DNA from: Heteronotia binoei
Taxonomy: Eukaryota
NCBI RefSeq assembly: GCF_032191835.1
Contig: NC_083239.1
Span: 55,924,001 to 55,988,000, forward strand
Length of the DNA: 64,000 bases
Direction of reading: 5' to 3'
The translations under genes and the position numbers were made by a program. The notes below the pieces were generated by a model. It saw only the letters and a program-made list of their open reading frames with translations, had not been told where the DNA came from and searched no databases. Below, one piece after another: positions 1 to 29,805 of this stretch (the stretch's first letter is position 1; the number at the start of each line of letters is the position of its first letter).

Positions 1-137
1 TACAGGAGCTCACAATGCTAAAGCTAGGAGCTCCCAAAGTAGACTTTTTGCTCACAAGACTCTGCAGCTTGGAGGGAGCCTTGGTGGCAACTGTTGTTTT
101 ATGGGCCGCTTGTAACGCGGATCCGCTTGCTCTTCAG

Positions 138-3109: not shown

Positions 3110-3306
3110 GCAAGGTCTGTTGTGTTAATTTCACCTCCGCAGAAGGCAGCTTCTCTTCCCCCTTCCAGGAGCTGGCTTGAGCTGAGCCTGTTGGCTTTCC
3201 CAGAAGGCATTGCTGGCGAGGGGCTGCTCAGGCAGAGAGGGGGAACCAACACTGCTCCCCCCCCACCAAAGTGCACGATCCCTTGTCTGGTCAGGGTGCC
3301 CTCTGC

Positions 3307-3360
3307 TCATTTGGGGCCTTTGAGAAACGGCTCATGGAGAACGTCATACAGCCTCTTGGC
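3307..3360 (-). CDS. ERCC1: ERCC1 coding exon 9 (last): AKRLYDVLHEPFLKGPK*
   Basis: Pyrimidine tract + AG acceptor (3361-62), TGA at 3309-3307; matches the ERCC1 C-terminus (ARRLFDVLHEPFLKVP in human). Confidence 0.97.
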   Translation of the reverse strand, partial: AKRLYDVLHEPFLKGPK

Positions 3361-3548
3361 CTGGGAGGAGAGAGAAGAGAGGTGAGGAAGGGACATCGTT
3401 TCTGTGGGCCTTGCAAACAAGTCGCAGGCAGGGCTCCTTTGTATCTTGTCTGTGGAAGCTGCAAGGGACAACCCCCCTCTCCCAGTTGTCTTTGGATTAT
3501 CCAGAACGTTTTGTCCCATCCTCCCCGCGGGACGTGTTCCCTGCTTAC

Positions 3549-3617
3549 CTTCTGGGGCCCGATCCCTGGGCAGAGGGAGAGCTCTTCCCTGGAGGCTTCA
3601 CCTAGGCTGGCCAGGGA
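3549..3617 (-). CDS. ERCC1: ERCC1 coding exon 8: SLASLGEASREELSLCPGIGPQK (HhH2)
   Basis: CAG acceptor, AAG|GTAAG donor, 69 nt, phase 0/0. Confidence 0.97.
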
Positions 3618-3894
3618 CTGCAAGGCAAGAGGAAGCCCTGCAATTAAGGAGGGGCTGAGCCCAACGCGGCACAAGGGTTCTGGAGGGCAAGAGGTGGGCG
3701 AGAGAGAGGGTGTCCTCAGTAAACGGACGGGACAAGTGGCCCCTTTAAGACCAATGAAGTTTCATTCAAGGTACATGCTTTTGCAGGTGTCCACACTTCT
3801 TCAGATGCAGGGGAGAAGCCAGAGAGAGAGAGACCTCTTGAAAATGGCTGAGATGGGGTTAAACAAGGATTTAGTAGTCCCGTGCCAACTTGGA

Positions 3895-4180
3895 TGGCCT
3901 GGCTAGCCTGAGCCTATCGGATCTCTGAAGCTAAACCCGGTCGACCCTGCTTGGGATTGGATGGGAGACCACCAAGGGAACCCCGGACTGCCCCCCAGAG
4001 AAGGGCAGTAGATGAAACTGCCCCTGTTTGCCTCTGCCCTGCTGTGGGTGGTCCAGGGTGGCCAGAGGTTGGAAGCTAAGCGGGGTTGGCCTTGCTCAGA
4101 AACTGGATGAGAGACCACCAAGGGAGCGCCCAGGGTTGCTACGCAGAGGCAGGCAAGGGCACCCACCAGTCAGCTGCAAT
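3895..4180 (+). mobile_element. Two decayed 5S rRNA-derived SINE (SINE3-like) fragments
   Basis: gatctctgaagctaa...ggatgggagaccacc resembles the 5S internal promoter; a similar copy lies at ~8430-8600. Confidence 0.55.
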
Positions 4181-4489
4181 TTAACCAAACTTTACACGCA
4201 CCCCCCCCCCCGGGCTTTATCCTGGATCCTGCTTTAAGGGTGGTGACTTAATAATAATAATACTATTTATTTATATCCCACCCTCCCCGCCAAAGCAGGC
4301 TCAGGCCGGCTCACAACATATCCCAATTACAGAATTACAATATAAAACATTTTCTCAGTACAATATAATTTGCTAATTAAAACCATCAAAATTAAAACTA
4401 ACATTTACAGTGCTGTGTTCTAAGTGTTCTCGGTAGTTTATGAGGGCCATATGTAGTATACTGAAATCCGCATTAAGCGAAGGCCAGTT

Positions 4490-4700
4490 GGGAAGGATGG
4501 TGGCTCAGTGGTAGAGCATCTGCTTGGTAAGCAGAAGGTCCCAGGTTCAATCCCCGGCATCTCCAACTAAAAAGGGTCCAGGCAAATAGGTGTGAAAAAC
4601 CTCCGCTTGAGACCCTGGAGAGCTGCTGCCAGTCTGAGTAGACAAGACTGACTTTGATGGACTGAAGGTCTGATTCAGTATAAGGCAGCTTCGTATGTTC
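4490..4700 (+). mobile_element. tRNA-derived SINE (Squam2-like)
   Basis: A box GGTGGCTCAGTGG, B box GGTTCAATCCC, tail ggcagcttcgtatgttc; second copy at 54096-54305. Confidence 0.75.
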
Positions 4701-4958
4701 AAAAGGATAGTCTTGCAGGCCCTACGGAAGTTTTGTGGCACGCTGATCCTAGCGTGACGCCCCACAGACTTCCTCTGAACTAACTTGGCTCCAAAGAACG
4801 GTTGGGGCAGGCAGTCTGGAACCTTCTTTGGTGGTGAAGTTTGCGGCAGGGAGGAATCCGAGGTGCACAATCTGAACTCTGTGCCTTTCTGAAAGGCGCT
4901 TGGTGGTCTGAGAGGGGGAGGGGAAGGGACGCCCGGCCCCAGAAGAGAAGCTACTTAC

Positions 4959-5030
4959 TCCAAACGTGGAGAGGAGGCTCAGCGTGTCCGTCTTGTTCAC
5001 TGACTTGATGCTGGTCAGGCAGTCAGTCAC
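4959..5030 (-). CDS. ERCC1: ERCC1 coding exon 7: VTDCLTSIKSVNKTDTLSLLSTFG
   Basis: CAG acceptor, GGA|GTAAGT donor, 72 nt. Confidence 0.97.
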
Positions 5031-5516
5031 CTGGGAAAGGAGCAGAACCACCTCAGCGCCTGACCTCTGGCAAAGCTTATCTCGCCTTGAAAGTTGTTAA
5101 TACCCCCCCAGTTCTTGGTGTGAGCTCTGGCAGGCCTCAAAAAGGCAATGTAGGAATGTAGGAATTCATGGCTGGTGACCCCACCCAAAAAAGCTGAACT
5201 GGGGGGGGCATCGGGCCTGCTGGGATTGCTGACTCTCATAACTGCCAGCCCTCCCCCTGTCCAATCAGGACCAGCCACGTAGGGGCAAGGGGCAGCAGAT
5301 GCCAGGCGAGGCACAGCTGGGGTGGGGGTGCTGCAGAGGTCAGAAGGAGTGCCCCCGGGCCCTGCCTCCAGCTACTTCCTGTGCCACAAAGATTTGGGGT
5401 CGGCTGGTTCTGTCTAAATGGAACATGTTTCTGAGCTGTTGCTGCAAGTTGCCTTGAATGGCAAGCTGAATCAGGAGACGAAAGTTTTAATAAATCAAGG
5501 GGGGGGGGGCTCTTAC

Positions 5517-5616
5517 TCGGGACAAGTAATTCTGCTCCACCTTCTCCTTCAGCAGGTCCGCCGGCTTCTGTTCGTAGGCCTTGTACGTTTCGAGGTAGCG
5601 TCCTGCTTCCTCCGGG
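5517..5616 (-). CDS. ERCC1: ERCC1 coding exon 6: (S)[33 protein letters not shown]
   Basis: CTGCAG acceptor, CGA|GTAAGA donor, 100 nt, phase 2 in / 0 out. Confidence 0.97.
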
Positions 5617-6296
5617 CTGCAGGTTGGAAAAGGAAACCGGGGGAATCTGGTTCAAGAGACCTACCAGAGGGGCAGGCGACTCTCTTGTGCGTCGCTCATC
5701 ACAGGTCAGAGTTTCCCTGGGGGGGGGGGGGAGGCCTCCGGGGGCATTTCAGGCTGGGAAAACGATGCACTGGGAGGAGGGGTTAGACCCCTCTCCCTCC
5801 ACATACCACAATCCCAATCGGGACTGGGCTTGTGCCTGCCTGGGGACGGAGTTAATGAAGCGCAGGACGCACCGGGAGGCCTGAACGCGCAAACCTGGGG
5901 AGGAGGAGGCAAGGGCAAGGCACCCTGTTGCTAGGCCCTGAGGTATGGCTCTTGGGAGGGCGTGGGGGGCACCCGACAATTCTGAGATCGGGAAGGTGCC
6001 TTTCTGCCTCCCTCCCCCAGCCCCCTGACCAGCATGGCTCTTCTGCTGGTTGCACAGCAGGCCTGGGAGGGGCCAGGCCCATCCTGCCAACCCCCCTTGC
6101 AACTATATGGCCCCTCCCCAATCTGTCCCCTTTGCTCACCACCATTCTGAACAAGTAGTAGCATTACTGATGGTTTTTCACTTCCCCCCCCCTCCCCTTC
6201 CCTAACACACCTTGCAGAGCAAAGGGGGGGGGGGGGAGTTGAGAGGTCTCTGTTTCTCTGAGAGAGGAGCACATAAGAAAGGGGTGGGGGGAACAG

Positions 6297-7712
6297 AAGA
6301 AGATGATATCGTATTTATATCCCGCCCTCCACTCCGAAGAGTCTCAGAGCAGCTCACCATCTCCTTTCCCTTCCTCCCCCACAACAGACACCCTGTGAGG
6401 TAGATGAAGATATTGGATTTATATCCTGCCCTCCACTCCGAAGAGTCTCAGAGCGGCTCACAATCTCCTTTCCCTTCCTCCCCCACAACAGACACCCTGT
6501 GAGGTAGATGAAGATATTGGATTTATATCCTGCCCTCCACTCCGAAGAGTCTCAGAGCGGCTCACAATCTCCTTTCCCTTCCTCCCCCACAACAGACACC
6601 CTGTGAGGTAGATGAAGATATTGGATTTATATCCTGCCCTCCACTCCGAAGAGTCTCAGAGCGGCTCACAATCCCCTTTCCCTTCCTCCCCCACAACAGA
6701 CACCCTGTGAGGTAGATGAAGATATTGGATTTATATCCTGCCCTCCACTCCGAAGAGTCTCAGAGCAGCTCACAATCCCCTTTCCCTTCCTCCCCCACAA
6801 CAGGCACCCTGTGAGGTAGATGAAGATATTGGATTTATATCCCGCCCTCCACTCCGAAGAGTCTCAGAGCAGCTCACAATCTCCTTTCCCTTCCTCCCCC
6901 CACAACAGACACCCTGTGAGGTAGATGAAGATATTGGATTTATATCCCGCCCTCCACTCCAAAGAGTCTCAGAGCAGCTCACAATCTCCTTTCCCTTCCT
7001 CCCCCCACAACAGACACCCTGTGAGGTAGATGAAGATATTGGATTTATATCCCGCCCTCCACTCCGAAGAGTCTCAGAGCGGCTCACAATCTCCTTTCCC
7101 TTCCTCCCCCACAACAGACACCCTGTTAGGTAGATGAAGATAGTGGATTTATATCCCGCCGTCCAGTCCGAAGAGTCTCAGAGCGGCTCACAATCTCCTT
7201 TCCCTTCCCCCCCTCAACAGACACCATGTGAGGTAGATGAAGATAGTGGATTTATATCCCGCCCTCCACTCCGAAGAGTCTCAGAGCGGCTCACAATCTC
7301 CTTTCCCTTCCCCCCCTCAACAGACACCATGTGAGGTAGATGAAGATATTGGATTTATATCCCGCCCTCCACTCCGAAGAGTCTCAGAGCAGCTCACAAT
7401 CTCCTTTCCCTTCCTCCCCCACAACAGACACCCTGTGAGGTAGATGAAGCTATTGGATTTATATCCTGCCCTCCACTCCGAAGAGTCTCAGAGCAGCTCA
7501 CAATCTCTATCTCCCTCTCCCACAACAGACACCCTGTGAGGTGGGTGGGGCTGAGGGAGCTCTTAGAGCAGCTGCCCTTTCAAGGACAACCTCTGCCAGA
7601 GCTCTGGCTGACCCAAGGCCATCTCAGCAGCTGCAAGTGGAGGAGTGGGGAATCAAACCCGGTTCTCCCAGATAAGAGTCTGCACACTTCACCACTGCAC
7701 CAAACTGGCTCT
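6297..7712 (-). repeat. Squam3-like SINE with its 3' ~104 bp amplified into 12 tandem units (6297-7540), in an ERCC1 intron
   Basis: tagatgaagata recurs at 6401, 6505, 6609, 6713, 6817, 6922, 7027, 7131, 7234, 7337, 7441; the tRNA-like head follows at 7540-7712. Confidence 0.9.
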
Positions 7713-7913
7713 CCAAGAGCTGCTGTGACTGCCCAGGTGAGGTGGGGTTAGCTTGTGGAACTTAAGGCAACTTACAGTGCCGAGAGCCCTGGGCTGCCAA
7801 ATTGGGTGGCCCCCCTCCCAAAAAATTCTGCTGTGGGCCCGCCAACCCATGAAATCCTGGCTACCGCCCTGTTGCACAGAGAACCTCCCCGTCACCCGAG
7901 TCTCCGCCCTCAC

Positions 7914-7990
7914 CTCCACGCGAGGACCAGGGTACAGTCTGCCAGAATACAGATCTTGGCCAGCTCCTTCAGGGCCTGGTGAGGGTCTTT
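7914..7990 (-). CDS. ERCC1: ERCC1 coding exon 5: [25 protein letters not shown](S)
   Basis: TTTAG acceptor, GAG|GTGAG donor, 77 nt. Confidence 0.97.
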
Positions 7991-8148
7991 CTAAAGGAAG
8001 CAGAGGGGGCACAGCCTGAGCCAGCGGAAAGGGGAGGGGAGGGAAATGCAGACGCAGAACAGAAGAGGTCTGCGCAGAGCCGTGAGGGAGCAGGGAGGAC
8101 TAAAGGGGGCAGCGAGGGTGGGTATCCTTGGGGTCTGGAGTCTCTCAC

Positions 8149-8248
8149 CACATCGACATGAATGAGGAGCACCTGCAGCAGGTAGGTCTTGCCCAGGCTC
8201 TGAAGGCGTTCGTGGATGTAGTTGGGCTTCAGGTTGTGGTAGCGGAGG
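8149..8248 (-). CDS. ERCC1: ERCC1 coding exon 4: (S)[33 protein letters not shown]
   Basis: CTGCAG acceptor, GTG|GTGAG donor, 100 nt. Confidence 0.97.
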
Positions 8249-8986
8249 CTGCAGGCGGATGAGAGACAGACGGACAGTCGCTAGTCAGGGCATCAACAGG
8301 AACTGTGATGCGTGTTTCAAAATTGCATTTCGGCCCCATGAGGACAAGCTTCATGTTTCTCTAGGCCTCAACAGCTTCCGCAGGTGTAATGCCCCCTTCG
8401 CTTGAATGTAAGATGACTCGCTTGCTCTGCGTGGCCCAGGCTGGCCTGATCTCATCTCTCATCGTATCTCTGCAGCTAAGCGGGGTCAGCCCTGGTGAAT
8501 GTTTGTAAGGGAGACCACCAAGGAAGCTCAGGGTTGCTACGCAGAGGCAAGCGATGGCCGACCACCGCTGTCCATCTTTGCCTTCCCCTGGATGGCGTCA
8601 CAGATTGTTCATGAACATTCCAATGCTGGAGCGCTGAAGCCCGCTTGGCCCAGAAAGTCCTCACTCAGTGGGAGGGACTGTGTGGTTTTGGCGAGGAAGG
8701 GATAGTGAGGAGAAGGGCTGGAGGTTGTGGGAGTAAAGAAGAGACTGGATTTATCCCCCGCCCTTCGCCCAGTCTCAGAGAGGCTTACAGCCTCCTTCCC
8801 TTCCTTTCCCCACAGCAGACACCCTATGAGGCAGGTTGGCCTTCCCCACTAAAGGTTAGGAAGGCAGCAGAGCTGAATTTCAGATTCTTTCAGTGGGAAC
8901 CAGACATGTCTAGAAAAGCAGCCGAATGCTTCTGGAACCAGGACAGCTGCTTGTATGCATGCTTGAGACACTGCGCAAATTCTCAC

Positions 8987-9090
8987 CTCAGGAACAGGGC
9001 GCAGGTGCTCTGGCCCAGGACATAGTCGGGGACAATCTCGCCAAACTCCCAGGGCACGTTGCGGATAAACTTCAGGATGGGGTTGCCCCG
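8987..9090 (-). CDS. ERCC1: ERCC1 coding exon 3: [34 protein letters not shown](S)
   Basis: TTCCTCAG acceptor, GAG|GTGAG donor, 104 nt; hallmark ERCC1 central-domain motif. Confidence 0.98.
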
Positions 9091-9502
9091 CTGAGGAAAG
9101 AAGGGAAGCCCAGTCAGAGACTGAGAGAGAAGGCAGGAGAATCCACCCAGCTCTGCCACAAACAGCCACTGGACTAGCGTCCACGGGAGAGGGAGAGGAG
9201 TAAAAGTGGTCTGTCAGAACTGGGAGGTTCTAAGGGGTGGGTTATTTGCAAGCAGCCTTGTCCCAGGGGCCTGAACTGTAGCCTGTCTTGAGCTTTGGGA
9301 GGTCTGCACCCCTCTGCAGCTTCAAGGTTCAGCCCCCACCCCACATTCAAGATTTCACAACTCTTTTTCAGCCCTGGAGCATCCCCATCGTTCATGACCA
9401 TTTGGCTGGTGAAATAAGACCAGCTTTCATTCTACAGCCCCGCCAGAAAGCTCCAAGCTGGAGGCTGGCCCGGGTATTCCTTCTCGCTCTGCCCTCTCCC
9501 AC

Positions 9503-9766
9503 CTGCCGAGGACTGACAACGATGGAGTTGAGCTTGGCCCCCAGTTTTGGAGCAGGATTCAGGGGTGGCTCTTTGCCTTCCAGGTTCCCCTGCACGGCCA
9601 GGGAGCTGTGGGGTTTGGTTGCTGCTGCTGGCTTTGCCTGGATGGCTGTGGAGGTGCCCGCTTTCTCCACGACATAGTCTGCATAGGTGGCCGCATCTGG
9701 CCGAACTGGAGCCTCAGGAGCCGGGGAGGGGCTTGAAGTGCTGGAGGGCTTGAAGAGCAGCCGTGC
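9503..9766 (-). CDS. ERCC1: ERCC1 coding exon 2: ARLLFKPS...ATYADYVV...GAKLNSIVVSPRQ
   Basis: GGCAG acceptor, CAG|GTGGG donor, 264 nt in frame; ends in the conserved NSI.VSPRQ. Confidence 0.93.
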
Positions 9767-9889
9767 CTGCCAATGGGAAAACAGAATTGAAAGGGTGTGT
9801 GCAAACTGAGAAGACCCACTGCGGTGTCTGCACCAGCAAGAGCTCAGAGGCAAGGAGGGCCCCAGGAGACACCCCACCCCCCTTTATAC

Positions 9890-9976
9890 CGGTGCCATAT
9901 TGTCATCCTCCTCCTGCATCTTCACGGTGAACTTCTTCCTCCCTTCAACGGTGGTCCCAGCTGGCCGAGGCTCCAT
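9890..9976 (-). CDS. ERCC1: ERCC1 coding exon 1: MEPRPAGTTVEGRKKFTVKMQEEDDNMAP
   Basis: Acceptor TTTCCAG at 9988-89, ATG at 9976, RKKF motif as in human, CCG|GTATAA donor. The joined CDS is 927 nt = 308 aa + stop. Confidence 0.88.
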
Positions 9977-16850: not shown

Positions 16851-17019
16851 TAGAACTGCATATTAACCTTTCAGGTTTCTTACTTCCTTCCAGACCAGGC
16901 AGAGAAGAGCCCTCTTGTGAGGTTCATCCTGACAGCCTGTTATTCCAACAAAGGTCAGCACCCACAGAGAGACGCAACCAGCACCCGGCAGTCCAATATC
17001 AGCAGCCAGAAGATACCAT

Positions 17020-17025
17020 TTTATT
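17020..17025 (-). terminator. AATAAA polyadenylation signal of the CIPC-like gene
   Basis: TTTATT on +, ~650 nt past the stop, with GU-rich sequence downstream on the minus strand. Confidence 0.6.
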
Positions 17026-17671
17026 GGACCATCTTTGGTCGGCAGCAGCATAACGCAAGCTTTTCCAGATAGGCAGAGCTCTTCACCAGGCAGAGAGTGG
17101 TACAGATTCACCCTTCAGTCCCCCAAGGGAGGGCGCAGTTCTCTTCTCCCAGCACAGCCTGCAAGCAGGTGGCAGTTTGGGTGGAAGGAGGAGGGGACTG
17201 GCTTCCTTACTGCCAGGAGGCCCCTGAACAGCCACGCCAGGAGAGACCCAAAGCCGAAAGCCCCGGTCCAGTCTGAAGGATGCTGGAAAGCTCTGGCGGA
17301 GTCTTGCTCCCAGAAGACAGACACAGTCCTGAGCTCCAGAGAGAGAAAGCTGTGATGCGATCAATGCCAAAACCACTCCTCTTTCCCAACCTGCCTTCGC
17401 TTCCGCCTCAGCAACCCAACCCACCAAGCTCCCCTCCCCTCCCCTCCACCAATCTAGTTCCCAGCCAGGCCGGCAGCGCCCAGCCTGATGCTCCAGGTTT
17501 AAAGGCCTCCCTCCCCTCCCCTCTCTCAGAGGCCATCCAAGTCCCCCAAGTGGCCAAGAGGGCCAGCCCGGCCTTCGTCTCAAAGCTCCTTCTGGAGGCT
17601 GAGGGTCAGGAGAGGCTCATCCCTTCTGCTTTCAAAGAACACCCTTTGCTCGGGAAGAAAACGCGGAGGGG

Positions 17672-18565
17672 CTAAGGCAGCTCTGGTCCCACTGAGGAGG
17701 CAGCCGGGGCCAGGGACAAATTCACAGGCGAGCTGGGGGGAGACTCTTGGGCCTCAGCTGCAGAGGAATCGGTGGCCTCGGCCGGCAGGCTCTGCCCCCG
17801 CAGCGGGTGAGAAGCGGCCCCCTTGCTGGCCCAGTAATCGGCGGAGCGGTCCACGGCCTCCTGGAGGCGGGTCCAGGCGAGGGTGTCGTTGCTCTGGACG
17901 GCCTCGCAGAGGAGCTGGGCTTGCTCCCGCAGCTCGGCCAAGTCCCGCTGCGTGTTGCTGCTCTGCCGGATCAGCTCCTTGGTCCGCAGCGTGATGCCCA
18001 GAAGCCCCGACCTCCGCAGGATCTCCACCGTGTTGTGGAAGCGGCGCTGCTTCGCCAGGCTGCTGAAGCCCAGTTTCTTGGAGGCCCTAGAGATCATCCG
18101 CACCTCCGCCTGCTCCAAGCCGGCCATCCCGCAGCCGGTGGACGAGGTGACGGCGTTCTGGGAGACGGCGGGAGGGTCCGAGGAAGCGGGGGGCGGGGGC
18201 GGCTCCCCTCCCTGCTTCTCCCCGCCACGTTTTGCCGCAGCAGGCTTGGAGGACGAGACCCAGGCCTCTTCCAAGCAGAAGCGCTTGTTCCTGCTGACGT
18301 TGTCGCCTGTCAGGGCGGCCTCCAGCCCTGCCGCCTTCGGCTGCCGGTCAAGGCCGGGGTGAGGAGCGATTTTGGGGTAAGTGCTGAGGCTGGCCGGGTA
18401 GGTCGCCTTGGTCGCCGCAGACTTCCGGTTGGGAAGGAGAGGCTTCAAGGTGGCCAGCGGCTGCTGGATGAGGAGCACGCGGGCTGGGGGGCCCTGCAGG
18501 CCGTTGAGGGAGTGTTGGCTGCCCCACGCCAGGAACTGGGTCGGGGCAGATGGGCCGCCTGGGGG
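17672..18565 (-). CDS. CIPC-like: CLOCK-interacting pacemaker (CIPC)-like protein, coding exon 3 (last)
   Basis: TTCTTCCTTCTGCAG acceptor (18566-67), TAG 17674-17672. Contains TYPKIAPHPG (human CIPC SYTKIAPHPG) and KQRRFHNTVEILRRSGLLGITLRTKELIRQ...LREQAQLLCEAV...AWTRLQ (human [30 protein letters not shown]...LKEQTQLFIEAT...AWAKLQ). Confidence 0.92.
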   Translation of the reverse strand, partial: PPGGPSAPTQFLAWGSQHSLNGLQGPPARVLLIQQPLATLKPLLPNRKSAATKATYPASLSTYPKIAPHPGLDRQPKAAGLEAALTGDNVSRNKRFCLEEAWVSSSKPAAAKRGGEKQGGEPPPPPASSDPPAVSQNAVTSSTGCGMAGLEQAEVRMISRASKKLGFSSLAKQRRFHNTVEILRRSGLLGITLRTKELIRQSSNTQRDLAELREQAQLLCEAVQSNDTLAWTRLQEAVDRSADYWASKGAASHPLRGQSLPAEATDSSAAEAQESPPSSPVNLSLAPAASSVGPELP

Positions 18566-18797
18566 CTGCAGAAGGAAGAAGCAAGAACAGGCGTTAGCCA
18601 GCAATCAACGGACGCAGCACTCTGGAAGGGCACAGGGCACTGGAGATCAGACTGGGCACCGCTGCCCCCCACCCCCCTTCCTTCCTTCTGGTCCACATCT
18701 GGGGCCCTGCTGGGAGGGAACGTGGGGGAGGGAGAAGAGGCTCCCAGGCAGCCGTGGCACAGAGCAGGCAGTGCCGGGGCCTCCTCTCAAGGGGTAC

Positions 18798-18979
18798 CTG
18801 TTTGAGGGCAACATTTCTGACAAAGTACACAGGAGCAAGGCTGGCGAAGGTGCCACCAGGAAGCCCCCCGGACGCCTTCTGTGGAGCCCTCTGCAGCTTG
18901 GGCGGGCGGCGCAGGGAGGAGGCGGACTGGTCCTCCGTGTCTGTCTGCTCCACGGTGCTCAGGTACTCCGAGCTCACAT
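18798..18979 (-). CDS. CIPC-like: CIPC-like coding exon 2: (D)VSSEYLSTVEQTDTED...FASLAPVYFVRNVALKQ
   Basis: TGTACAG acceptor, CAG|GTACC donor, 182 nt, phase 1 in / 0 out; matches CIPC DGSSECLSSAEQMESED and FPTLSPMVVMKNVLVKQ. Confidence 0.9.
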
Positions 18980-19544
18980 CTGTACAGAGAGGTACAAAAG
19001 GGGGGGGGGGGAGAAGTATTCAGGAGGCAGGAGGGAAAAAAAGAAGGCGAAACACTCAGCTAACCACTCCCCCCCCACGAGGGCCCCAACCCCGCTTAAC
19101 GGCACCAAGGATGTCCTACTGTGAACCCAGACCTCTACCCACATCCCCTTTTTCAAATTTTCCAGCCTGGGCCCCTTTGTGCAGCTCAGCCATTACTTTC
19201 CCACAACCAGGGTTCAAACTGGGGCTACGACAATCATTTTGCGTGGCTCTGCACTTCCCAGAGGGACCCAGGAAGGCAAGAGCGCCGGTGGCAAGATCCT
19301 GCCAGACATCCAGCCAAAAAGCTGCTTCCCCTTGAAAGTCCCTTTCCCCATTTTATTTCCCAGCCACTTCTGGCCTTCTCTGTTGAAGTGGTAGCGGAAA
19401 TAATCCGTGAAAAATTACTAATACAAGTTAAAGCCACAATTCATACACAATTAATATAATCTCAATAATTTATGAATGAAAGGTCTTACAGACCACAACA
19501 ATATTTCATCTTCGCAATATGCATCAGTGCATTCCCATGAGAGT

Positions 19545-20085
19545 CAGTTTGGTGTAGTGGTTAAGTGTGCGGACTCTTATCTGGGAGAACCGGGTTTGAT
19601 TCCCCACTCCTCCACTTGCAGCTGCTGGAATGGCCTTGGGTCAGCCAGAGCTCTCTTATCTGGGAGAACCGGGTGTGATTCCCCCCTCCTCCACTTGCAG
19701 CTGCTGGAATGGCCTTGGGTCAGCCAGAGCTCTTAAGAACATAAGAGAAGCCATGTTGGATCAGGCCAGTGGCCCATCCAGTCCAACACTGTGTCACAGA
19801 AGAACATAAGAGAAGCCCTGTTGGATCTGGCCAGTGGCCCATCCAGTCCAAAACTCTGTGTCACAGAAGAACATAAGAGAATCCCTGTTGGATCAGGCCA
19901 GTGGCCCATCCAGTCCAACACTGTGTCACAGAAGAACATAAGAGAAGCCCTGTTGGATCAGGCCAGTGGCCCATCCAGTCCAACTCTCTGTGTCACAGAA
20001 GAACATAAAGAGAAGCCATGTTGGATCAGGCCAGTGGCCCCTCCAGTCCAACACTCTGTGTCACACAGTGGCCAAAAAACCAGGC
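19545..20085. repeat. Squam3 head duplication (19545-19735) followed by 5 tandem ~68-bp CR1 3'-tail units
   Basis: aagaacataagagaagcc...ccagtccaacact repeats. Confidence 0.85.
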
Positions 20086-20401
20086 GCCATCAGGAGGTCC
20101 ACCAGTGGGGCCAGGACACGAGAAGCCCTCCCACTGTGCCCACCCCCCTCTTCTCTAACCAGAGGCACACGCCTCCCCCCAGAATACACTCAGCCATGCA
20201 GCACAGGGCCTGTAAGGCAGAGGTGTTCTGCCAGGCTATTGGTCGAGAGCAGCAACAGTCTTCCCATTGGCTGGCACCCCTTCTTCCCTCCCCCCCACAA
20301 TATAATCCAATTGTATTGTAAGAGTTGTCCTCGAAAGGGCAGCTTATAAGAGTTGTCCTCGAAAGGGCAGCTTCTGTCAGAGCTCTCTCAGCCCCACCCA
20401 C

Positions 20402-20915
20402 CTCACAGGGTGTCTGTTGTGGGGGAGGAAGGGAAAGGAGATTGTGAGCCGCTCTGAGACTCTTCGGAGTGGAGGGCGGGATATAAATCCAATATCTTCA
20501 TCTACCTCACAGGGTGTCTGTTGTGGGGGAGGAAGGGAAAGGAGACTGTGAGCCGCGCTGAGACTCTTCGGAGTGGAGGGTGGGATATAAATCCAATATC
20601 TACCTCACAGGGTGTCTGTTGTGGGGGAGGAAGGTAAAGGAGATTGTGAGCTGCTCTGAGACTCTTCAGAGTGGAGGGCGGGATATAAATCCAATATCTT
20701 CATCTACCTCACAGGGTGTCTGTTGTGGGGGAGGAAGGGAAAGGAGATTGTGAGCCGCTCTGAGACTCTTCGGAGTGGAGGGCGAGATATAAATCCAATA
20801 TCTTCATCTACCTCACAGGGTGTCTGTTGTGGGGGAGGAAGGGAAAGGAGATTGTGAGCCACTCTGAGACTCTTCGGAGTGGAGGGCGGGATATAAATCC
20901 AATATCATCATCTTC
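20402..20915 (+). repeat. Squam3-like 3'-end tandem array, 5 units of ~98-104 bp
   Basis: Reverse complement of the 6297-7540 unit. Confidence 0.88.
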
Positions 20916-22244
20916 TTCTTGCTAGTGTAAAACTTGAAAAGTTCTCCAATATATCCCAAGTCAAGTGTAGATATCCTGGAAGACGTGGATAGTCAGCATA
21001 TTCTTCACGTTTCAATCTTTGTTGAGGGATGCATTGGACAGAGTATCCAGCACAATATCTTGACAGTGGCAAAAGCTCAAGACGTTGCACATGAATTGTG
21101 GCTTTAACTTTTATTAGTCATTTTTCACGGATTATTTCCACTACCTCCATGATTCTCTTTTCTTCTCCTCTGCTGAACTGGCTACTTCCATGTAGACAGA
21201 TCCCAGTAGGCAATGGATGTTATCATCTCTTGAGAAACCAGGCCCTCTATTTAAACTAACAAAACCAGAATGTTACCTAGATTTATGGCACTTCGCACCT
21301 ACAACGGCAGTCTGCTTTTTAATCACCCTCCAGTGTTTTTCTTTCAGCCCTGCTTTGTCCTAACACTGACAAACACAGATCCCTGTTTGCGATTCTTTTA
21401 ATCTGCTAAAAACATTCCCATGATTCCACACTGCCCACTTATATTAAGAATCGCTGCTTGCCGTTCCCATTTTGTCTGATGAAGTCTGCCTAAGAGCATC
21501 CGAAAGCTTCCATTCTAAATAAAACTTCGTTGGTCTTAAAGGTGCGCTTGCCTGCTGCTTTGTTCTCTGGCTACTTCCAGCTCACTGCAGGGATGCCTGA
21601 ATCTATCCTTCTGTCCTTCCGGGCGTGTCAGCAGCCAGAGAAGGGAAGGGGAATGTGTTAAGTTACTGCTTCTCTCCCCCCCACCCCCCCAAACCAAAGA
21701 ACTGCTTGTTGATTTTCCACGATAGCCAAGCTTTAATTGCACAACCCCAAAATAAGGAGCAATTGATTCAGCTGAGAAACAGTCATCAAATCCCCCCCCC
21801 CCTTCCATTCCCCACCATCATGGCCACTGTCCTGAAACAACTGAGGCCAAATTCAGGAATGGGGGATCAGAAATTAAGTGGGAAGGAGCAAATGAAATGG
21901 GAAAGGAGCCCAGGAACACCGCAGTCGCTCCCTGCCCGTTCACACTGGAAATTTAATATATATATTTTTAATTAGATCAGGAAAAGAAAGATGGAAAAGC
22001 AACACAGGAGCATCTGGCAGCACTGCCCAGATTCTTGTTGAGCAGAGAGCCAACACACCAAGTCCTGCTCAGAGAACAAAGCAGTAGACAGGTGGTAAGT
22101 TGGTAATTATAGAGACAGCCCCACCCTCCCCCTCCAGCACTCTTCCTTCCTGGCCTCATGATCCCCCCCACCCCTGCAAAGGGCTCCCCAGAAGGCTGGA
22201 TCTAGAGCTCCTTCCACAGAGAAGGGTCAAACAGTTTGGTGAGA

Positions 22245-22510
22245 GAGTCGGTTTGGTGTAGTGGTGAAGCGTGCGGACTCTGATCTGGGAGAACCGGGTT
22301 TGATTCCCCCACTCCTCCACTTGCAGCTGCTAGCATGGCCTTGGGTCAGCCATAGCTCTTGTAGGAGTTGTCCTTGAAAGGGCAGTTTCTGTCAGAGCTC
22401 TCTCAGCCCCACCCAACTCACAGGGTGTCTGTTGTGGGGGAGGAAGATAGAGGAGATTGTGAGCCGCTCTGAGACTCTGAATATAGGACAGGATATAAAT
22501 CCAGTATCAT
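22245..22510 (+). mobile_element. Squam3-like (MIR/Ther1-derived) SINE, near full length
   Basis: gagagtcggtttggtgtagtgg...ccgggtttgattcccc...ggatataaatcc. Confidence 0.8.
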
Positions 22511-23195
22511 CATCCAACAGGAACTTGAAGGAGCCAGTCTATGTTTTGGATCCTCCAGCAGAGGAGAGAAGAAACTGGAGCCAATCCCTTCTGCCCCGTC
22601 TCACTTGCAGGGAAGGACAGATGCTTCTGCTCTGGACAGAGAGGTGCTCCAGAAATCCTTCCCGTGGGGGGCCACAGCTCCTCTGCAAGGACGCTTACTC
22701 GCGGGGAAGCCACATGCCACGAATCCAAGTCCCTCCATTGCCAGGGTCTGAGACGGACACCCTCCCCTTCTTGTGCTTCCCTCACCTCAGAAGCATTTTG
22801 AATTTCTTTTTTCTCAAAATGAACATTTGCAATAATCTACAGAGCAGCAGTAGTGGCAGGGAGAGGGGCTCCGGATCTCGGGGGGGGGGGGGGGCTTCCA
22901 GGGTGTCACGGCCTTTTCACAGTTAAGAGGACAAGAGACTCTTTGCCTGGCAGAGGGATGGAGCAATCGAGGGAGATGGGCAGATTGGAGTGGGTGCAGA
23001 GGAGAGTGGCGAAGATTATCCGGGGCCTGGAGACCAAGCCCTGCAAGGAAAGGTTGAGGGACTTTAAGGATGTTCAGTCTGAAGAAGAGGAAGTGGGAGG
23101 GGGGGGGAGGAGAACACGATAGCTCTCTGTGTGTATTTGAAAGGTGCTCTCTTAGGGGAGGGCAGAGAACTGTTCCTGTTTGCAACATAGAGGGA

Positions 23196-23494
23196 AAAGG
23201 AAAGGTCCCCTGTGCAAGCACCAGTCGCTTCCGACTCTGGGGTGACGTTGCTTTCACAACGTTTTCACGGCAGACTTTTTACGGGGTGGTTTGCCCTTGC
23301 CTTCCCCAGTCCTCTACACTTTCCCCCAGCAAGCTGGTGACTCATTTGACCGACCTCAGAAGGATGGAAGGCTGAGTCAACCTGGAGCCGGCTACCTGAA
23401 CCAGCTTCTGCTGGAATCAAACTCAGGTCATGAGCAGAGAGTTCAGACCACAGCACTGCAGTACTGCTGCTTTACCACTCTGCGCCACGGGGCT
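23196..23494 (+). mobile_element. Sauria SINE
   Basis: aaggaaaggtcccctgtgcaagcacc...ctgcgccacggggct. Confidence 0.85.
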
Positions 23495-25639
23495 GCATAG
23501 AGGAGGACCTGCAATAATGGGTTTGCATTATGACCAGAAAGATGCTGGCCAGAGATTAGAAACTTTTAACAAACTTTGTACTTTGTTCAGCAGTGGAATC
23601 AGCTGCCGAGGGAGACAGTGAGCTCTCTCTCGCTGGCATGCTTCGAGCAGCGGGTGGACAAATGCTCGTCAGGGATGCTCAAAGCTGATCCTGCAGGGAG
23701 CTGGATGAGATGGCCTCTAGGGTCCCCTTCCAACTCTGATTCTGTAAGTGAAGATGCTGTGCAAAGCGCAGGAGGATGGAGGGAGCTCAGCGCATGACTG
23801 GGCAGGCTGGGACAGCACCGTCGAGTGAGGAAGGGGCCCCCAAACCCTGCATCTCCCTGCCCTTTTTTATTTTCAAAGCCCCCCATTCTCCCAAGCTCCA
23901 GTGCCCCAAGCATAGAAGCAGAGACCTATTCCCCACTCGCCTTCTGCCGCTCTCACTCCCCTCTTCTCCGTGGGGCTTCACTAGGGTTTCACACGATCTG
24001 CCCCGGGGTTGTAACTCACTCCACCTCTTTCGCGCAGCAAACAAGATCCTCTAAAAACCAGATTCTGTTTGCCACGCGGAAAAGGCAAAGCGAGTTACAG
24101 CCCCGGGGCAGAGAGAGTGAAATCCCACGAAAGCCCTGCAGAGAAGAGGAGCGTGAGAGCGGCAAAAGGCGAGTGGGGAAATCGGTCAGAGTGTCCTAGG
24201 ATGCCTTTGGTGCATAACAGCCTGGCTGGAGAAGAAAAATAGAGGGTCCTTCCTCCTCCTCCTCCTCTCTTAGTGTCATGAGCCCCAGGGGACCTTGTGC
24301 CGAAGGGCCACTCTCTGCAATGGGCTATATCTGGCCTTTGGTTACCTGCTTCCAAGCACCGAGTGCTGAGGTCAGATGCCAAAGGGCTGTTTTGCATGTC
24401 AGCTTTGCAGGAGACCCACGGCCAGCTTCTCTCTGCTGCACCTCTGACAGAGAAGGCGGCCCCAGCAGCTTTCAGACTTCAGCAGAAAACAGGAGAGTGG
24501 GCAGGGGAATAAGGACTCCTTCCCCATCTTGTTAGTGCCAGGAACTCTGTGTATGCTCTGAGGAACCTGTTACGGCTTCAGTAACGGGTGTTTAGCAGAA
24601 TTCATTTCAACTGAATTTTTAAAAATTTAAATGTCTCTGTGGTCTGTGCCTTTTCCCTGTGGTTTTTTGCTCCCCTTTTTTACCATTTTTAAAATCCAGC
24701 AACACTTTTCCTTTTTTATCCTCTCTTTTATAATAAACCCGTTTTTAGAAAGACTAGTTTTGCTTTGCTTAGTACAATTCACTTCTCTGAGATAGCAACC
24801 TCTTCCAAATATGCTGGGTCACACAGGCACTTCTGGGTCGGTTCTAAGGTGTTTCCCAGGGTTCCTTTCTTGTCTGGCAGATCATGAGAGGGGGCACGAA
24901 GCGGTGGAGCCGGAACTCAGCTCTCATGGCCCTTTCTTATATGCCCAAGGAAATGCAAATTGCCACTTTGGGGTCAAGGTGGAATCTTCCTCCAGATCAC
25001 CCTCCCCTGGGCACACTGGTGGGGTGGGAGGTAGCTATGAATTTCCTGCATCGTGCAGGGGGTGGGATTTGGACTAGATTACCTCTGGGGTCCCTTCCAG
25101 CTCAATGTTTCCATTGCTGTAGTGCTGTAGTGCTCCTAATGGCATCAGTCTAGATGTCCTCAGGTAGCGACTGGGTACCAGGGCGTTCTCAAGGGAACTC
25201 TTGTTGGAAGGAAGATTGCCAGTAAGGAAAGACAGCATTCCCCCTTTACTACTGTAGCAACTGACCACTCCTAATGACAACAGAAGAAGATGAAGATGAT
25301 GATATAGGATTTATATCCTGCCCTATACTCTGAATCTCAGAGTCTCAGAGCAGACACAATCTCCTTTACTTTCCTCCCCACACCACACCACACACTGTGA
25401 GGTGGGTGGGGCTGAGAGAGCTCTCACAGCAGCAGCCCTTCCAAGGACTGCTCTGTGAGAGCTATGGCTGACCCAAGGTCATTCCAGCAGGTGCAACTGG
25501 AGGAGTGGGGAATCCAACCCGGTTCTCTCAGATAAGAGTCTGCACACTTAACCACTACACCAAACTGGCTCTCTTCCTCCCCCACAACAGACACCCTGTG
25601 AGGTGGGTGGGGCTGAGAGAGCTCTCACAGCAGCAGCCC

Positions 25640-26060
25640 TTTCAAGGACAACCTCTGCCATAGCGATGGCTGACACAAGGCCATTCCAGCAGCTGCAAGT
25701 GGAGGAGTGGGGAATCAAACCCGGTTCTCCCAGATAAGAGAGCTATGGCTGACCCAAGGCCATTCCAGCAGCTGCAAGTGGAGGAGTGGCGAATCAAACC
25801 CGGTTCTCCCAGATAAGAGAGCTCTGGCTGACCCAAGGCCATTCCAGCAGGTGCAAGTGGAGAAGTGGGGAATCAAACCCGGTTCTCCCAGATAAGAGAG
25901 CTATGGCTGACCCAAGGCCATTCCAGCAGGTGCAAGTGGAGAAGTGGGGAATCAAACCCGGTTCTCCCAGATAAGAGAGCTCTGGCTGACCCAAGGCCAT
26001 TCCAGCAGCTGCAAGTGGAGTAGTAAAGAATCCATCCTGGTTCTCCCAGATAAGAGTCCA
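25640..26060 (-). repeat. Squam3 internal 79-bp tandem array (~5 units)
   Basis: 79-nt periodicity (ORF starts 25707, 25786); the unit includes a B-box-like GGTTTGATTCCC. Confidence 0.88.
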
Positions 26061-26078
26061 CGCATTTAACCACTTCAC

Positions 26079-26214
26079 CAGGGGTGGCCAACAGTAGTTC
26101 TCCAGATGTTTTTTGCCTACAACTCCCATCAGTCTCAGCCATCGGCCATGCTGGCTGGGGTTGATGGGAGTTGTAGGCAAAAAACATCTGGAGAGCTACC
26201 GTTGGCCACCCCTG
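26079..26214. mobile_element. Short palindromic hAT MITE inserted in a Squam3 head
   Basis: TIR CAGGGGTGGCCAAC; TSD CACTTCAC/CACTACAC (1 mismatch). Confidence 0.8.
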
Positions 26215-26394
26215 CACTACACCAAACCGGCTCTCAGCAACAACTCGTTCTCTCCATGCACCAAGAGTCTTCCTGCGGTGCCTCAAAGTGTTGGATTTGG
26301 GGGTGTGGAGGGTTCATGTTAACTGGCAGCTGCATTCCCTGAAAGAGTGACCTCCCACATGTGCCCCCCCACGCCCCGTCTGCAGGCCCCCTAC

Positions 26395-26593
26395 CAGAGA
26401 ACCCCGAGTCCTTCTCCACTTCACTCAACGAATGATGGGACTTCCCGCTATATTTGAGGCCTGCTGCCATCTTCTCGGCCTGTACCGGGCGGCCCTTCGA
26501 GTCGGGGCACTCTGACTTTGAGGACCGAGCTGGGCCGGTCTTCTTCCCGGGCTTGGACGGATGACCAGGCGGGGAGGGCTGACCAGAAGGCAT
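26395..26593 (-). CDS. CIPC-like: CIPC-like coding exon 1: MPSGQPS...SEVEKDSGFS
   Basis: Perfect Kozak GCCACCATG at 26593; acceptor CTTCCTCCAG at 26614-15; EKDSGFS G|GTAG phase-1 donor (CIPC: ESDKDSGFSD). The joined CDS is 1275 nt = 424 aa + stop. Confidence 0.88.
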
Positions 26594-26684
26594 GGTGGCG
26601 CTCTCAGCTGCTCCTGGAGGAAGAAGAGGGACAAAAGGACCGTGAGGTCAGGCAGGGGTGTGCCCACGCAGGAGAATCATAAGA

Positions 26685-27480
26685 GTTGGAAGGGACCTCC
26701 AGGATCATCTAGTCCAACCCCCTGCACAATGCAGGAAACTCACAAACCCCTCCCCCTAAATTCAGAGGATCCTCATTGCTGTCAGATGGCCATCTAGCCT
26801 CCGTTGAAAAACCTCCAAGGAAGGAGAGCCCACCACCTCCTAAGGAAGCCTGTTCCACTGAGGTACCGCTCTAGCAGTCAGAAATCATAGGGTTGGAAGG
26901 GACCTCTAGGGTCATCTAGTCCAACCCCCTGCACAATGCAGGAAACTCACAAACACCTCCCCCTAAATTCACAGGATCCTCATTGCTGTCAGGTGGCCAT
27001 CCAGCCTCTGTTTAAAAACCTCCAAGGAAGGAGAGCCCACCACCTCCCAAGGAAGCCTGTTCCGAGGAACTGCTCTAGCGGTCAGGAATGATAAGAGTTG
27101 GAAGGGACCTCCAGGGTCATCTAGTCCAACCCCCTGCACAATGCAATAAACCCACAAACCCCTCCCCCCAAATTCACAGGATCCTCATTGCTGTCAGGTG
27201 GCCATCCAGCCTCTGTTTAAAAACCTCCAAGGAAGGAGAGCCCACCACCTCCCAAGGAGGAAGCCTGTTCCACTGATGAACCGCTCTCACGGTCAGGAAG
27301 CTCTTCCTAATGTTGAGCTGGAAGCTTTTTTGATTTAATTTCCACCTGTTGGTTCTGGTCCTACCTTCCGGGGCCACAGAAAACATTTCCACACCATCCT
27401 CTAGATGACAGCCTTTCAAGTTTTTGAAGATGGTGATTCTATCACCTCTCAGCCACCGCCACCAGGCTAAACACCTCCAG
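26685..27480 (-). repeat. CR1 fragment with its 3' end triplicated in tandem
   Basis: ggttggaagggacct...tccaaccccctgcacaatgc recurs at ~26685, 26890, 27095. Confidence 0.8.
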
Positions 27481-29131
27481 CTCCTTCAACCTTTCCTCAT
27501 GGTCTCCAGAGATCACAAGCCAAGAGATCTCCAGAGATCACACGAGAGATCACACGCCAAGCAAGATGACGTCCACTCCTTACAGGGCTGGTGCCACATT
27601 CCTGCCAGACCCCTGTGATTGATTTCACTGCCTCCTGAGAAACCTCGTCACAAGCCAAGCTCCCAGGGCTGCCTTATGGCTGCTTACGCGTCCCCCACAC
27701 ATCCCATACAAATGCGCAACATTCACTTGTAGGATTTCTTCTACTGGAAATTCATGGGGCCTTTTTCCTTGGGTCTCGCTCTGGGGGAGAGCAATAAGAA
27801 GAGCCCCCCGAGATCTCCCTGCTGCCGTTGTTCTAAAAGCCACAATGCCCCTGTTCATTCAGCCACCAGAGAAACCGCTGGGCGCGTCGTCACTGGGGAC
27901 TGCAACGAGACTGTGAGCGGCTGTGAATCTTATTAAGGGCGTTAATACATGTCTTGACGGAACTTTAATAATTCAGCGTTGAGACTTTACATACGATATT
28001 GTGGATTTAAGAACACTTCAGAGAATATTTAATACGGTTGAGATTTGCACTAAGAATGTGGTGGCGATAGCTTGTGTGTTTTTGCACGCCCACCAGAATT
28101 CCCAGGGGGCCCACTCAACGTTGACAGCCTCCAGGGGTGGCCTGGAGACCTCCCAGAATTACAACAACTTATCTCTAAACAGCAAGAGATCACCTCCCCC
28201 AGGAGAAAACGCCTGTTTTGGAGGGAGGATTCTGCGGCACATGCCTCCCCTCCCCAAATCCCACCCTCTGCAGGTTCCACCCCCAAATCTTCAGGAATTT
28301 CCCAACCCACAGCGGGGTGCCCCTAGGCTCAGTGCAAGCACCCGCCCCATCCCCCGTTCCCTGGTCCTTTTATCTTCACAAGCTGCTGGGAAGGACTCCG
28401 GCCCACCCCACCCCGCTGTGACTTCCTCCAACAAGAACCTTCTTCACAAACTTACCCAAGGGGGCCACAACCTTCGTGGCATTACTAAATCCCCCCACCC
28501 CGACAACTGTGGTGGATACGGGAACCCACGAAGCTCCCGTATTCTGAATCAGAACCAACAAGTTGTCTGCTCAGACCGGCAGCTGCTCTCCAGGATCTCA
28601 GGCAAAGAAAGGTCTTTCTCATCCTCTCTGCTCGGTCCTTTTCACAGGAGACGCTGCCGGGGATTGAACCTGGGACCTTCTGCGTGCCAGGCAGATGCTC
28701 TGCCTTTGTCCCAGCTTTGCCACCAATCTGCTCTCACAACAAACAAAACCTTCCATTTTCCTGTCGGGTTAACCCACGACGCCTCAGACTTTGCAGCTGA
28801 GCAGAACTTAACTTCCCCCCCCCTCCCCCTCTAACCACTACACACACACACACACAACCCCGGCCGTGTCTCACAAACCCCACAAATGACAACCAGAGCC
28901 GCTCTCAGAAACATGTCGCCGGGTTTTGCTCACCTAAACAAAGGCTGTGGCTGTGCCTCCCACCGCATCTGGGGCTGACAGTCCAGGGGCTCCACCAGCT
29001 AGGACCACAAGCCCGCCCGCAGCCCCCTTCCGTGCTCCAGAGGAAGCTGAGCATCCCCCTCCATCTCCCCCAGAGCCAGCGTGTCCCCTCTCCTCTCTGC
29101 CGCCAGGGCGAGGCTGCAGAGTCTCCCTGCG

Positions 29132-29805
29132 ATTACATAACCAGGCCGACAGCCTCCCTCCCTCCCCACCCCGACTGACTCCTCTTGCACGGCCTGCCAC
29201 AGCCACGGGCGGGCGGGCGGGGAGGAGCCAGCCGGGCCAGCAGCCCCCTCCGCTCTCCTGCAGCCTGCCTTTGGAGGGCGGTGCCGGCAGGCAGCTGTTT
29301 GTGACACATGGCCGCGCAACAGCCCCACAGACACATTGCGAGCCACGTGCTCCCCGGCCGGCTCTCACGGTGCCAAGACAGCTACAGGTGGCCTCCCTCC
29401 TGCCAGGTTCCTACAGAGGAAGAGAGAGCGAGAGCGGCAGTATGTGGGAGAACTCCTCCCTGCGGGGCAGAAGGGGCAAGCGTGACTCAGACAGAAACCA
29501 AAGGCAGATGGGCTTCTGGGCAGGACCAGAAGCAGACCACGGATGGATCTCCTGGACGGATCCCGTTTCCAACACGCCTGGCCTCAGCACAAGACCACTG
29601 CATGGCTGTCACTCACGTTCCTTCTCACCCGCTTTCCCTCAGGGGCCGGAGGGCGATCGCCCATCTACACCCCACTCCCATCGGCAATATGAGGGATTCG
29701 TTAACAGGTGCGTTTGGATGTTTGACGACCGGAACCACCGCCAAGACCTGAAGTGGAGCATTAAACGTCCACATGACATGCTAAGCGGTACAGAAATTAC
29801 ATAAT
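29132..29805. promoter_or_regulatory. D-box/E-box cluster (ATTACATAAC 29132-41, CACGTG 29344-49, ATTACATAAT 29796-805) in a GC-rich intronic patch
   Basis: Exact matches to the PAR-bZIP/NFIL3 consensus RTTAYGTAAY (minus strand) and the CLOCK:BMAL1 E-box. Confidence 0.55.

Follow-up and report, generated by a model that had tools for sequence, protein, structure and literature searches.

An intact and transcribed CIPC-like gene in a gecko genome

We analyzed a 64,000-nucleotide (nt) window of the genome of the gecko Heteronotia binoei (contig NC_083239.1, positions 55,924,001 to 55,988,000 of the forward strand; coordinates below count from the first letter of the window), focusing on a gene for a relative of the CLOCK-interacting pacemaker CIPC. 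This CIPC-like gene is encoded on the minus strand by three coding exons, with GT/AG at every border. Coding exon 1 (26395..26613), placed by sequence reading and translation, starts with 20 nt of 5′ untranslated region (UTR), has its ATG at 26593 and carries codons 1-66 plus one base, between an acceptor AG at 26615-26614 and a donor GT at 26394-26393 (GTAGGG). Because this first coding exon has an acceptor of its own, at least one non-coding exon is expected upstream. Coding exon 2 (18798..18979, minus strand, 182 nt) lies between the acceptor ..TGTACAG and the donor GTACCC and encodes ..DVSSEYLSTVEQTDTED.. and FASLAPVYFVRNVALKQ. Coding exon 3 (17672..18565 including the stop, minus strand) follows the acceptor ..TTCTGCAG and supplies codons 128-424 with the YPKIAPHPG block, a low-complexity linker, C-terminal helices and a tail. 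The exon phases agree (199 + 182 = 381 nt), and the coding sequence of 1275 nt yields a protein of 424 amino acids (aa). We placed the 3′ UTR at 16993..17671 (minus strand): the RNA contig spanning the spliced coding sequence reaches 17546, and low-depth separate RNA contigs over 16993-17421 mark a candidate distal part, for a possible extent to ~16993.

A previous sequence-only reading of this DNA had described three intact exons with canonical splice sites and matching phases that encode 424 aa, and both our reading of the sequence and the translation bear this out. Its ‘perfect Kozak’ is near-perfect, as the start-codon context gccaccATGc has C rather than G at position +4. All four motifs that it quoted occur in the translation, namely EKDSGFSD (over the exon 1/2 joint), FASLAPVYFVRNVALKQ, YPKIAPHPG and RRFHNT...LLGITLRTKELIRQ. 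The proposed CIPC identity also holds. The Pfam CiPC family (PF15800, gathering cutoff 27) matched exon 3 with 149.5 bits (E 2.8e-43) and exon 2 with 35.9 bits (E 1e-08), and the protein is 100% identical to the 424-aa NCBI entry ‘CLOCK-interacting pacemaker-like [Heteronotia binoei]’. The CiPC family and its Pfam model are already known, as is the mode of action of canonical CIPC, and NCBI annotates the gecko protein and orthologues in dozens of species. Full-text literature searches yielded gene lists only and no published study of the CIPC-like paralogue.

The CIPC-like gene is intact, spliced and transcribed. The splice joint 18565->18798 (GT..AG, minus strand) was present in RNA of three runs, in one 1499-nt RNA contig, in two raw reads of a second run and in ten of a third. 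RNA depth was ~5-15x over exons and near zero over the intron. The 1499-nt contig reaches 272 nt 5′ of exon 2 and so exceeds the 219-nt first coding exon by ~54 nt. Transcripts from other individuals differed from the reference at 13 sites (seven synonymous, six non-synonymous) and by one in-frame 24-nt indel. The latter, an insertion behind 18167 (codon 260) in the proline/serine-rich low-complexity linker, was found in one transcript contig only and is missing from the reference and the remaining RNA runs, marking it as a length polymorphism. For comparison, we rebuilt the Gekko japonicus orthologue from its locus; the coding part of exon 1 (199 nt) and exon 2 (182 nt) have the same lengths as in Heteronotia. 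The Nei-Gojobori ratio of non-synonymous to synonymous substitution rates (dN/dS) between the two genes was 0.32 overall, with a dS of 0.38, and 0.21-0.43 in each of four segments. The gene is under purifying selection of moderate strength, as is usual for largely disordered proteins.

Two ancient clades of CIPC proteins

To place the gene within its family, we combined an exhaustive HMMER search, in which 1.84 billion representatives yielded 167 family members, with a FastTree phylogeny of the 136 longest rows among these members and an IQ-TREE analysis (LG+C20+F+G4) of 55 named proteins over 451 columns. FastTree split the CiPC family into two clades, termed here A, with canonical CIPC, and B, with the gecko gene. 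IQ-TREE supported clade A with 100/99 and clade B with 91/95 and left the cyclostomes outside both. Clade A comprises human, cat and other mammalian CIPC, proteins of frogs, newt, tuatara (A0A8D0L6N4), birds, turtles and alligator, coelacanth ‘cipc a’, teleost cipc genes and a ‘CLOCK-interacting pacemaker’ of the gecko Euleptes europaea. A search with the tuatara clade-A protein added turtles, alligators, ~60 birds and mammals. The Heteronotia gene is excluded from this canonical orthologue group that includes human CIPC and sits inside clade B, where its nearest rows are Gekko, Euleptes-like and Eublepharis. Further clade-B members come from squamates, tuatara, turtles, alligator, birds, caecilians, salamanders, coelacanth, sharks, gar and teleosts.

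In seven taxa, both clades are represented by one gene each: Latimeria, Sphenodon, Euleptes, Alligator sinensis, Lepisosteus, Acipenser and Astyanax. In an exon 3 search, for example, the ‘-like’ protein of gar was 42% identical to the gecko query versus 30% for gar ‘cipca’. Forcing the sauropsid clade-B genes together with amniote CIPC cost 157.5 log-likelihood units in an approximately unbiased (AU) test (p-AU 0.0004). This test was run after the tree had been seen, and the forced group is the case that the sequence-only reading had itself set against its proposal. Together, the trees and the seven taxa with both genes identify the gecko gene as an ancient paralogue, and with the AU result they uphold the earlier view of a paralogue rather than a moved orthologue. 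The duplication is ancient because ray-finned and lobe-finned lineages occur in both clades and cartilaginous fishes, in addition, in clade B; on these sequences, clade B is at least as old as the jawed-vertebrate common ancestor.

The cyclostome CiPC proteins P0288 (Lethenteron), P0331 (Petromyzon) and P0278 (Myxine) are very long-branched and group with neither jawed-vertebrate clade. In the literature, CIPC-like genes are also mentioned for cnidarians, along with a putative orthologue in Drosophila. These proteins and reports indicate that the family is older than ‘vertebrate-specific’.

Retention and loss of the two copies

The sequence-only reading had suggested a gene kept in reptiles and lost in mammals. 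Our protein searches agree with the mammalian part in that they found no mammal in clade B. The range extends far beyond reptiles, with sharks, ray-finned fishes, coelacanth, caecilians, salamanders and birds also carrying clade-B genes. The best 120 matches of a word-indexed search with exon 3 came from squamates, tuatara, turtles, alligator, ratites, caecilians, salamanders and coelacanth and, among fishes, from sharks, rays, gar, bichir, sturgeon and many teleosts; no mammal, frog or neognath bird was among these 120. At the protein level, neither the word-indexed nor the exhaustive HMMER search placed any mammal or anuran in clade B.

A loss of clade B in neognath birds was considered and rejected, since the crested eagle Morphnus guianensis has a short, divergent CiPC gene in the slot between CLPTM1 and ERCC1. 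This gene (L009:10001-11467) encodes a truncated, fast-evolving protein of 239 aa that is 35% identical to the ostrich protein, is devoid of the YPKIAPHP block and has an altered RRF.NT helix start. Clade B is missing from most bird annotations, which may reflect poor assembly of this GC-rich region. A reciprocal loss of canonical CIPC in squamates likewise fails as a general statement. No squamate was among the best 120 matches to tuatara canonical CIPC, but the gecko Euleptes has a clade-A protein, P0348, of 313 aa. Its N-terminal block lacks the initial EKDSGFS, both the YPKIAP and the helix motifs are altered, and its branch length is 0.90 changes per column, compared with 0.07-0.4 in turtle, alligator, bird and tuatara. 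The protein searches turned up no further clade-A representative from a squamate. Canonical CIPC may be under relaxed constraint in squamates. As the canonical copy looks fast-evolving and was hard to find there, clade B may provide the main CIPC activity of squamates.

The C-terminal helix and its predicted partner

Canonical CIPC represses CLOCK:BMAL1 through the CLOCK exon-19 coiled coil (PMC8795551, PMC7726318, PMC12285964). The corresponding segment of the gecko protein, a presumed CLOCK-binding helix (17864..18043, minus strand, codons 302-361), is homologous to the mouse CIPC segment crystallized with CLOCK exon 19. The 64-residue mouse CIPC chain in the PDB (5vji_C) matched exon-3 residues 178-237, corresponding to protein residues 305-364, without gaps (E 7.9e-13). 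Within the helix, the gecko protein and cat CIPC agree at 33 of 60 residues (55%) versus 28% identity over the whole protein; overall identity to canonical CIPC is 26-31%. AlphaFold2 predicted helices at residues 275-291, 297-313, 315-352 and 355-378 and disorder for the remainder, with predicted local distance difference test (pLDDT) values of 88-98 over residues 290-370 and 82-98 from residue 281, and a mean of 58.

We then counted conserved columns over 52 proteins from both clades. Ten columns were invariant (P195, T306, L310, S313, G314, L315, L316, T322, L339 and L361), and about eight to nine of them, along with 14 of 25 nearly invariant ones, fall inside residues 302-361, the nearly invariant columns mostly within residues 302-349. 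No column among the 52 proteins was fixed differently between clades A and B at >=85% conservation. Given that the helix is the best-conserved part of the family and is homologous to the exon-19-binding helix, the CIPC-like protein most likely binds CLOCK, and perhaps NPAS2 as well.

These features suggest a mechanism in which a largely disordered protein would act through its C-terminal helix (~residues 297-378, core 302-361). The helix would join the CLOCK exon-19 coiled coil, as the homologous mouse CIPC helix does, and the protein would then damp CLOCK:BMAL1 transcription independently of CRY in the manner of canonical CIPC.

A conserved upstream block with E-box and D-box motifs

Sequence just upstream of the first coding exon is a 207-nt tandem repeat, and neither E-box, D-box, ROR response element (RRE) nor cAMP response element (CRE) motifs were found within 2.4 kb upstream of the ATG or in intron 1. 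Farther upstream, ~2.5-3.2 kb from the ATG, lies a block conserved between Heteronotia and Gekko, in which long identical runs surround the motifs, versus a mean identity of 77%. It contains a putative non-coding first exon (28934..29100, minus strand), proposed from a donor (..TTTAG followed by GTGAGC, last exon base 28934) that is conserved with its flanks between the two geckos. The acceptor of the first coding exon and the ~54 nt by which the RNA contig exceeds that exon also speak for it; for its own interval, no RNA run was listed. Adjacent to it is a putative promoter block (29133..29420, minus strand) that is nearly unchanged between the two genera; the arrangement suggests a promoter and a non-coding first exon, both putative. 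The promoter block features a canonical E-box CACGTG (29344-29349), E-box-like CACCTG/CAGCTG sequences and a D-box TTATGTAA (29133-29140, minus strand). A second D-box TTATGTAA (29797-29804, minus strand) is also conserved in Gekko. The D-E-D order is kept, with spacings of 455/209 nt in Heteronotia and 439/215 nt in Gekko, and the window contains five D-boxes versus 0.59 expected by shuffling. The conserved E-box and two D-boxes suggest that the gene is driven by clock or light/proline and acidic amino acid-rich basic leucine zipper (PAR-bZIP) factors; such control would place it in a negative feedback limb.

Beyond geckos, blastn gave no meaningful alignment of the gecko promoter block with turtle, bird or fish upstream regions. 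The ostrich has two CACGTG ~0.6 kb upstream of the ATG, and Morphnus has four CACGTG and a CRE within ~150 bp, ~1.1-1.2 kb upstream of the ATG, both in GC-rich sequence where chance matches are commoner.

A separate motif group lies ~8 kb beyond the CIPC-like promoter, where a palindromic D-box TTACGTAA (37214-37221) is located between canonical E-boxes at 36908 and 38369. The interval 36908-38374 has no called gene, and its longest open reading frame (ORF) had no Pfam match. The interval may serve as a distal clock or PAR-bZIP enhancer, or the motifs may be grouped by chance.

A probable second CIPC and its alternatives

Taken together, the locus probably holds a functional gene for a second vertebrate CIPC paralogue, a predicted CLOCK exon-19-binding repressor of CLOCK:BMAL1. 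A wider version is more tentative, and we offer it as a possibility in which we have less than even confidence: clade-B CIPC would be a clock-driven (E-box/D-box) CLOCK exon-19-binding repressor that forms an extra negative limb in most non-mammalian vertebrates and was lost independently in mammals and frogs. Several observations weigh against these proposals. Of the 60 helix residues, 27 differ from mammalian CIPC, so that partner specificity could have shifted. Window-wide, E-boxes are not above chance (seven versus five expected), the putative promoter block was aligned between two geckos only, and the non-coding first exon is a putative one. Support for clade B (91/95) is good but below the maximum, and the cyclostome rows have very long branches. 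Moreover, a passage of a review states that inactivation of mouse Cipc left circadian rhythms unaltered (PMC12285964), so that even a protein that truly binds CLOCK could be of little consequence.

Among the other explanations, the one with most to commend it is a true ancient paralogue with a different job, in which the helix binds another coiled-coil partner or the protein serves a process other than the clock, such as signalling or the cell cycle. The low overall identity to canonical CIPC (26-31%) and the same 27 of 60 diverged helix positions are compatible with such a shift, as are features kept in clade B but not found throughout clade A, such as the conserved C that follows the L.. motif and a tail Y. 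The persistence of two copies over a long time in many lineages, too, often accompanies division of labour. Yet most residues invariant over both clades belong to the helix seen in contact with CLOCK in 5VJI, and the search for positions fixed differently between the clades at >=85% conservation came up empty. The E-box/D-box motifs in the conserved putative gecko promoter block argue in the same direction, as do papers that group zebrafish si:ch211-132b12.7, whose orthology to clade B is unconfirmed, with up-regulated circadian genes. We consider a different job unlikely, if a serious contender.

Decay into a non-functional copy with a still-open frame would suit a protein that is mostly low-complexity and predicted disordered, that is expressed at low depth and whose eagle orthologue is short (239 aa) and has no YPKIAPHP block. 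It is highly improbable given the intact 424-codon frame, canonical splice sites, spliced RNA and dN/dS of 0.32, the identical exon lengths in Gekko and sequence blocks conserved from sharks to geckos. Least credible of all is that the gecko's only CIPC is the orthologue of mammalian CIPC, relocated beside ERCC1 and fast-diverged. The trees group the gene with shark, gar, coelacanth, turtle and bird CIPC-like proteins apart from clade A, and the AU test rejects its union with amniote CIPC. The use of plain ‘CLOCK-interacting pacemaker’ as the NCBI name of the clade-B gene in many non-gecko squamates would agree with a move, as would the tuatara canonical CIPC search without a squamate among its best 120 matches; the Heteronotia evidence here, moreover, covers the clade-B copy. 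Against this, the gecko Euleptes carries both clade-A and clade-B proteins, and the ERCC1-adjacent position is common to turtles and birds, which also have canonical CIPC.

Relation to known clock repressors

Read as a second CIPC, the gecko protein shares with the canonical one the PF15800 family, an N-terminal EKDSGFSD acidic block, a PV..KNV.LKQ block, a YLPIL..YPKIAPHP block and a long disordered linker followed by C-terminal helices, including the helix of PDB 5VJI/5VJX, which aligns ungapped at 55% identity. It differs in belonging to a separate clade that split off before the jawed-vertebrate radiation and in which no mammal or frog was found, and in adjoining ERCC1 in a 19q13-type rather than a 14q24-type region. 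The teleost genes cipca and cipcb, which cycle in fish transcriptomes (PMC8297936), belong to the CiPC family like the gecko gene but by name all fall in clade A. They look like teleost duplicates of canonical CIPC, and the fish counterparts of the gecko gene would be the separate clade-B ‘CIPC-like’ genes. In papers, zebrafish si:ch211-132b12.7 is listed under ‘circadian rhythm’ and is up-regulated with per1a/b, per2, cry, nr1d1, ciarta and bhlhe41. This listing fits a clock-driven CIPC-family gene, while its clade-B membership could not be confirmed by sequence. With CHRONO/CIART and CRY, the CIPC-like protein would share the logic of a clock-driven repressor that feeds back on CLOCK:BMAL1. 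These proteins are unrelated to it and target the BMAL1 transactivation domain, whereas CIPC helices target CLOCK exon 19 (PMC8795551).

The gecko gene is, in sum, an uncharacterized member of a known family, with a plausible role in the clock as judged from sequence. To our knowledge, no repressor other than CIPC is known to work via the CLOCK exon-19 coiled coil, and CIPC has been studied almost exclusively in mammals. An equally old second paralogue that ranges from sharks to birds and is unseen in mammals means that clock models for fish, reptiles and birds may lack a component. Loss-of-function work on zebrafish CIPC may be buffered by redundancy. The two clades would also be a clear example of clock-gene ohnologues lost differently among lineages, and the helix (residues 296-378) and the E-box/D-box block are testable pieces. 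In kind the finding is not surprising, as extra clock-gene paralogues are common outside mammals, and the expected effect size is modest in light of the review's report on mouse Cipc inactivation.

Genomic neighborhood and origin

The locus is close to one end of a 56.9-Mb chromosome record. Next downstream of the CIPC-like gene and on the same strand is ERCC1 (3294..9976, minus strand), an NCBI gene with Rad10 and HHH_5 domains (HHH exon 3294-3761) that starts 7.7 kb past the CIPC-like stop. Convergent with ERCC1 is the large exon of POLR1G (CD3EAP; 94..2109, plus strand), recognized by a Pfam RNA_polI_A34 match below cutoff (E 1.8e-05, 25.4 bits versus 31.7); the ostrich and eagle loci have the POLR1G Pfam family at the corresponding position. 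On the other side, ~32 kb upstream of the putative CIPC-like promoter, lies exon 1 of a CYP2-type P450 gene (61179..61454, plus strand), which encodes a membrane anchor followed by a ..LPPGPTPLPLVGN.. motif and matches p450 profile positions 1-27 below cutoff (E 0.016); the rest of this gene is outside the window. The stretch in between is repeat-rich and includes an assembly gap of 469 N (32126-32594).

The same arrangement recurs in other sauropsids, with CIPC-like-ERCC1 in the turtle Mauremys and CLPTM1-CIPC-like-ERCC1-POLR1G in both the ostrich Struthio and the crested eagle Morphnus, followed in the latter by an Ank/SH3 gene that we take to be PPP1R13L. CLPTM1, ERCC1, POLR1G and PPP1R13L are genes of human 19q13.32. 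Sauropsid CIPC-like sits directly upstream of ERCC1-POLR1G in this human 19q13.32-type order. The 19q13-type neighborhood that the sequence-only reading had recognized is therefore conserved in gecko, turtle, ostrich and eagle and not gecko-specific. In human, ERCC1 is flanked by FOSB on the CIPC-like side, canonical CIPC (KIAA1737) maps to 14q24.3, and the 14q24 and 19q13 regions are paralogous (FOS/FOSB, TGFB3/TGFB1 and others). Within 10-kb flanks, ERCC1 was not found at the clade-B loci of alligator gar, sawfish and tetra, nor was any neighbor found within 10 kb of chicken canonical CIPC. That reading had also proposed a whole-genome-duplication ohnologue. The timing of the duplication and the clade-B synteny fit this origin and support it well, although they do not prove it.

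Several fish clade-A models (P0101, P0146, P0147, P0159 and P0172) are fused to a PDGF/VEGF-type domain (PF00341), indicating that in fishes a PDGF-family gene is the immediate neighbor of clade-A CIPC. This gene may be pgf, a 14q24-type neighbor.

Repeats in the window

Tandem arrays with units of 65-67, 79, 104 and 207 nt occupy 19574-20913, 25371-26056, 26674-27299, 30012-30612 and 33297-35210 and account for repetitive ORFs in the window. The 79-nt and 65-67-nt units recur at several places in intron 1 and the upstream region. An Rfam scan of 15-30 kb gave no match. Between the CIPC-like gene and ERCC1, the segment 16187-16891 reached a maximal summed word depth of ~100,000 in contigs and ~600x in raw reads, compared with 5-15x for the gene itself. 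Its RNA showed many joints that go back and loose ends without consensus. The segment behaves like a highly transcribed interspersed repeat rather than a part of the CIPC-like gene.

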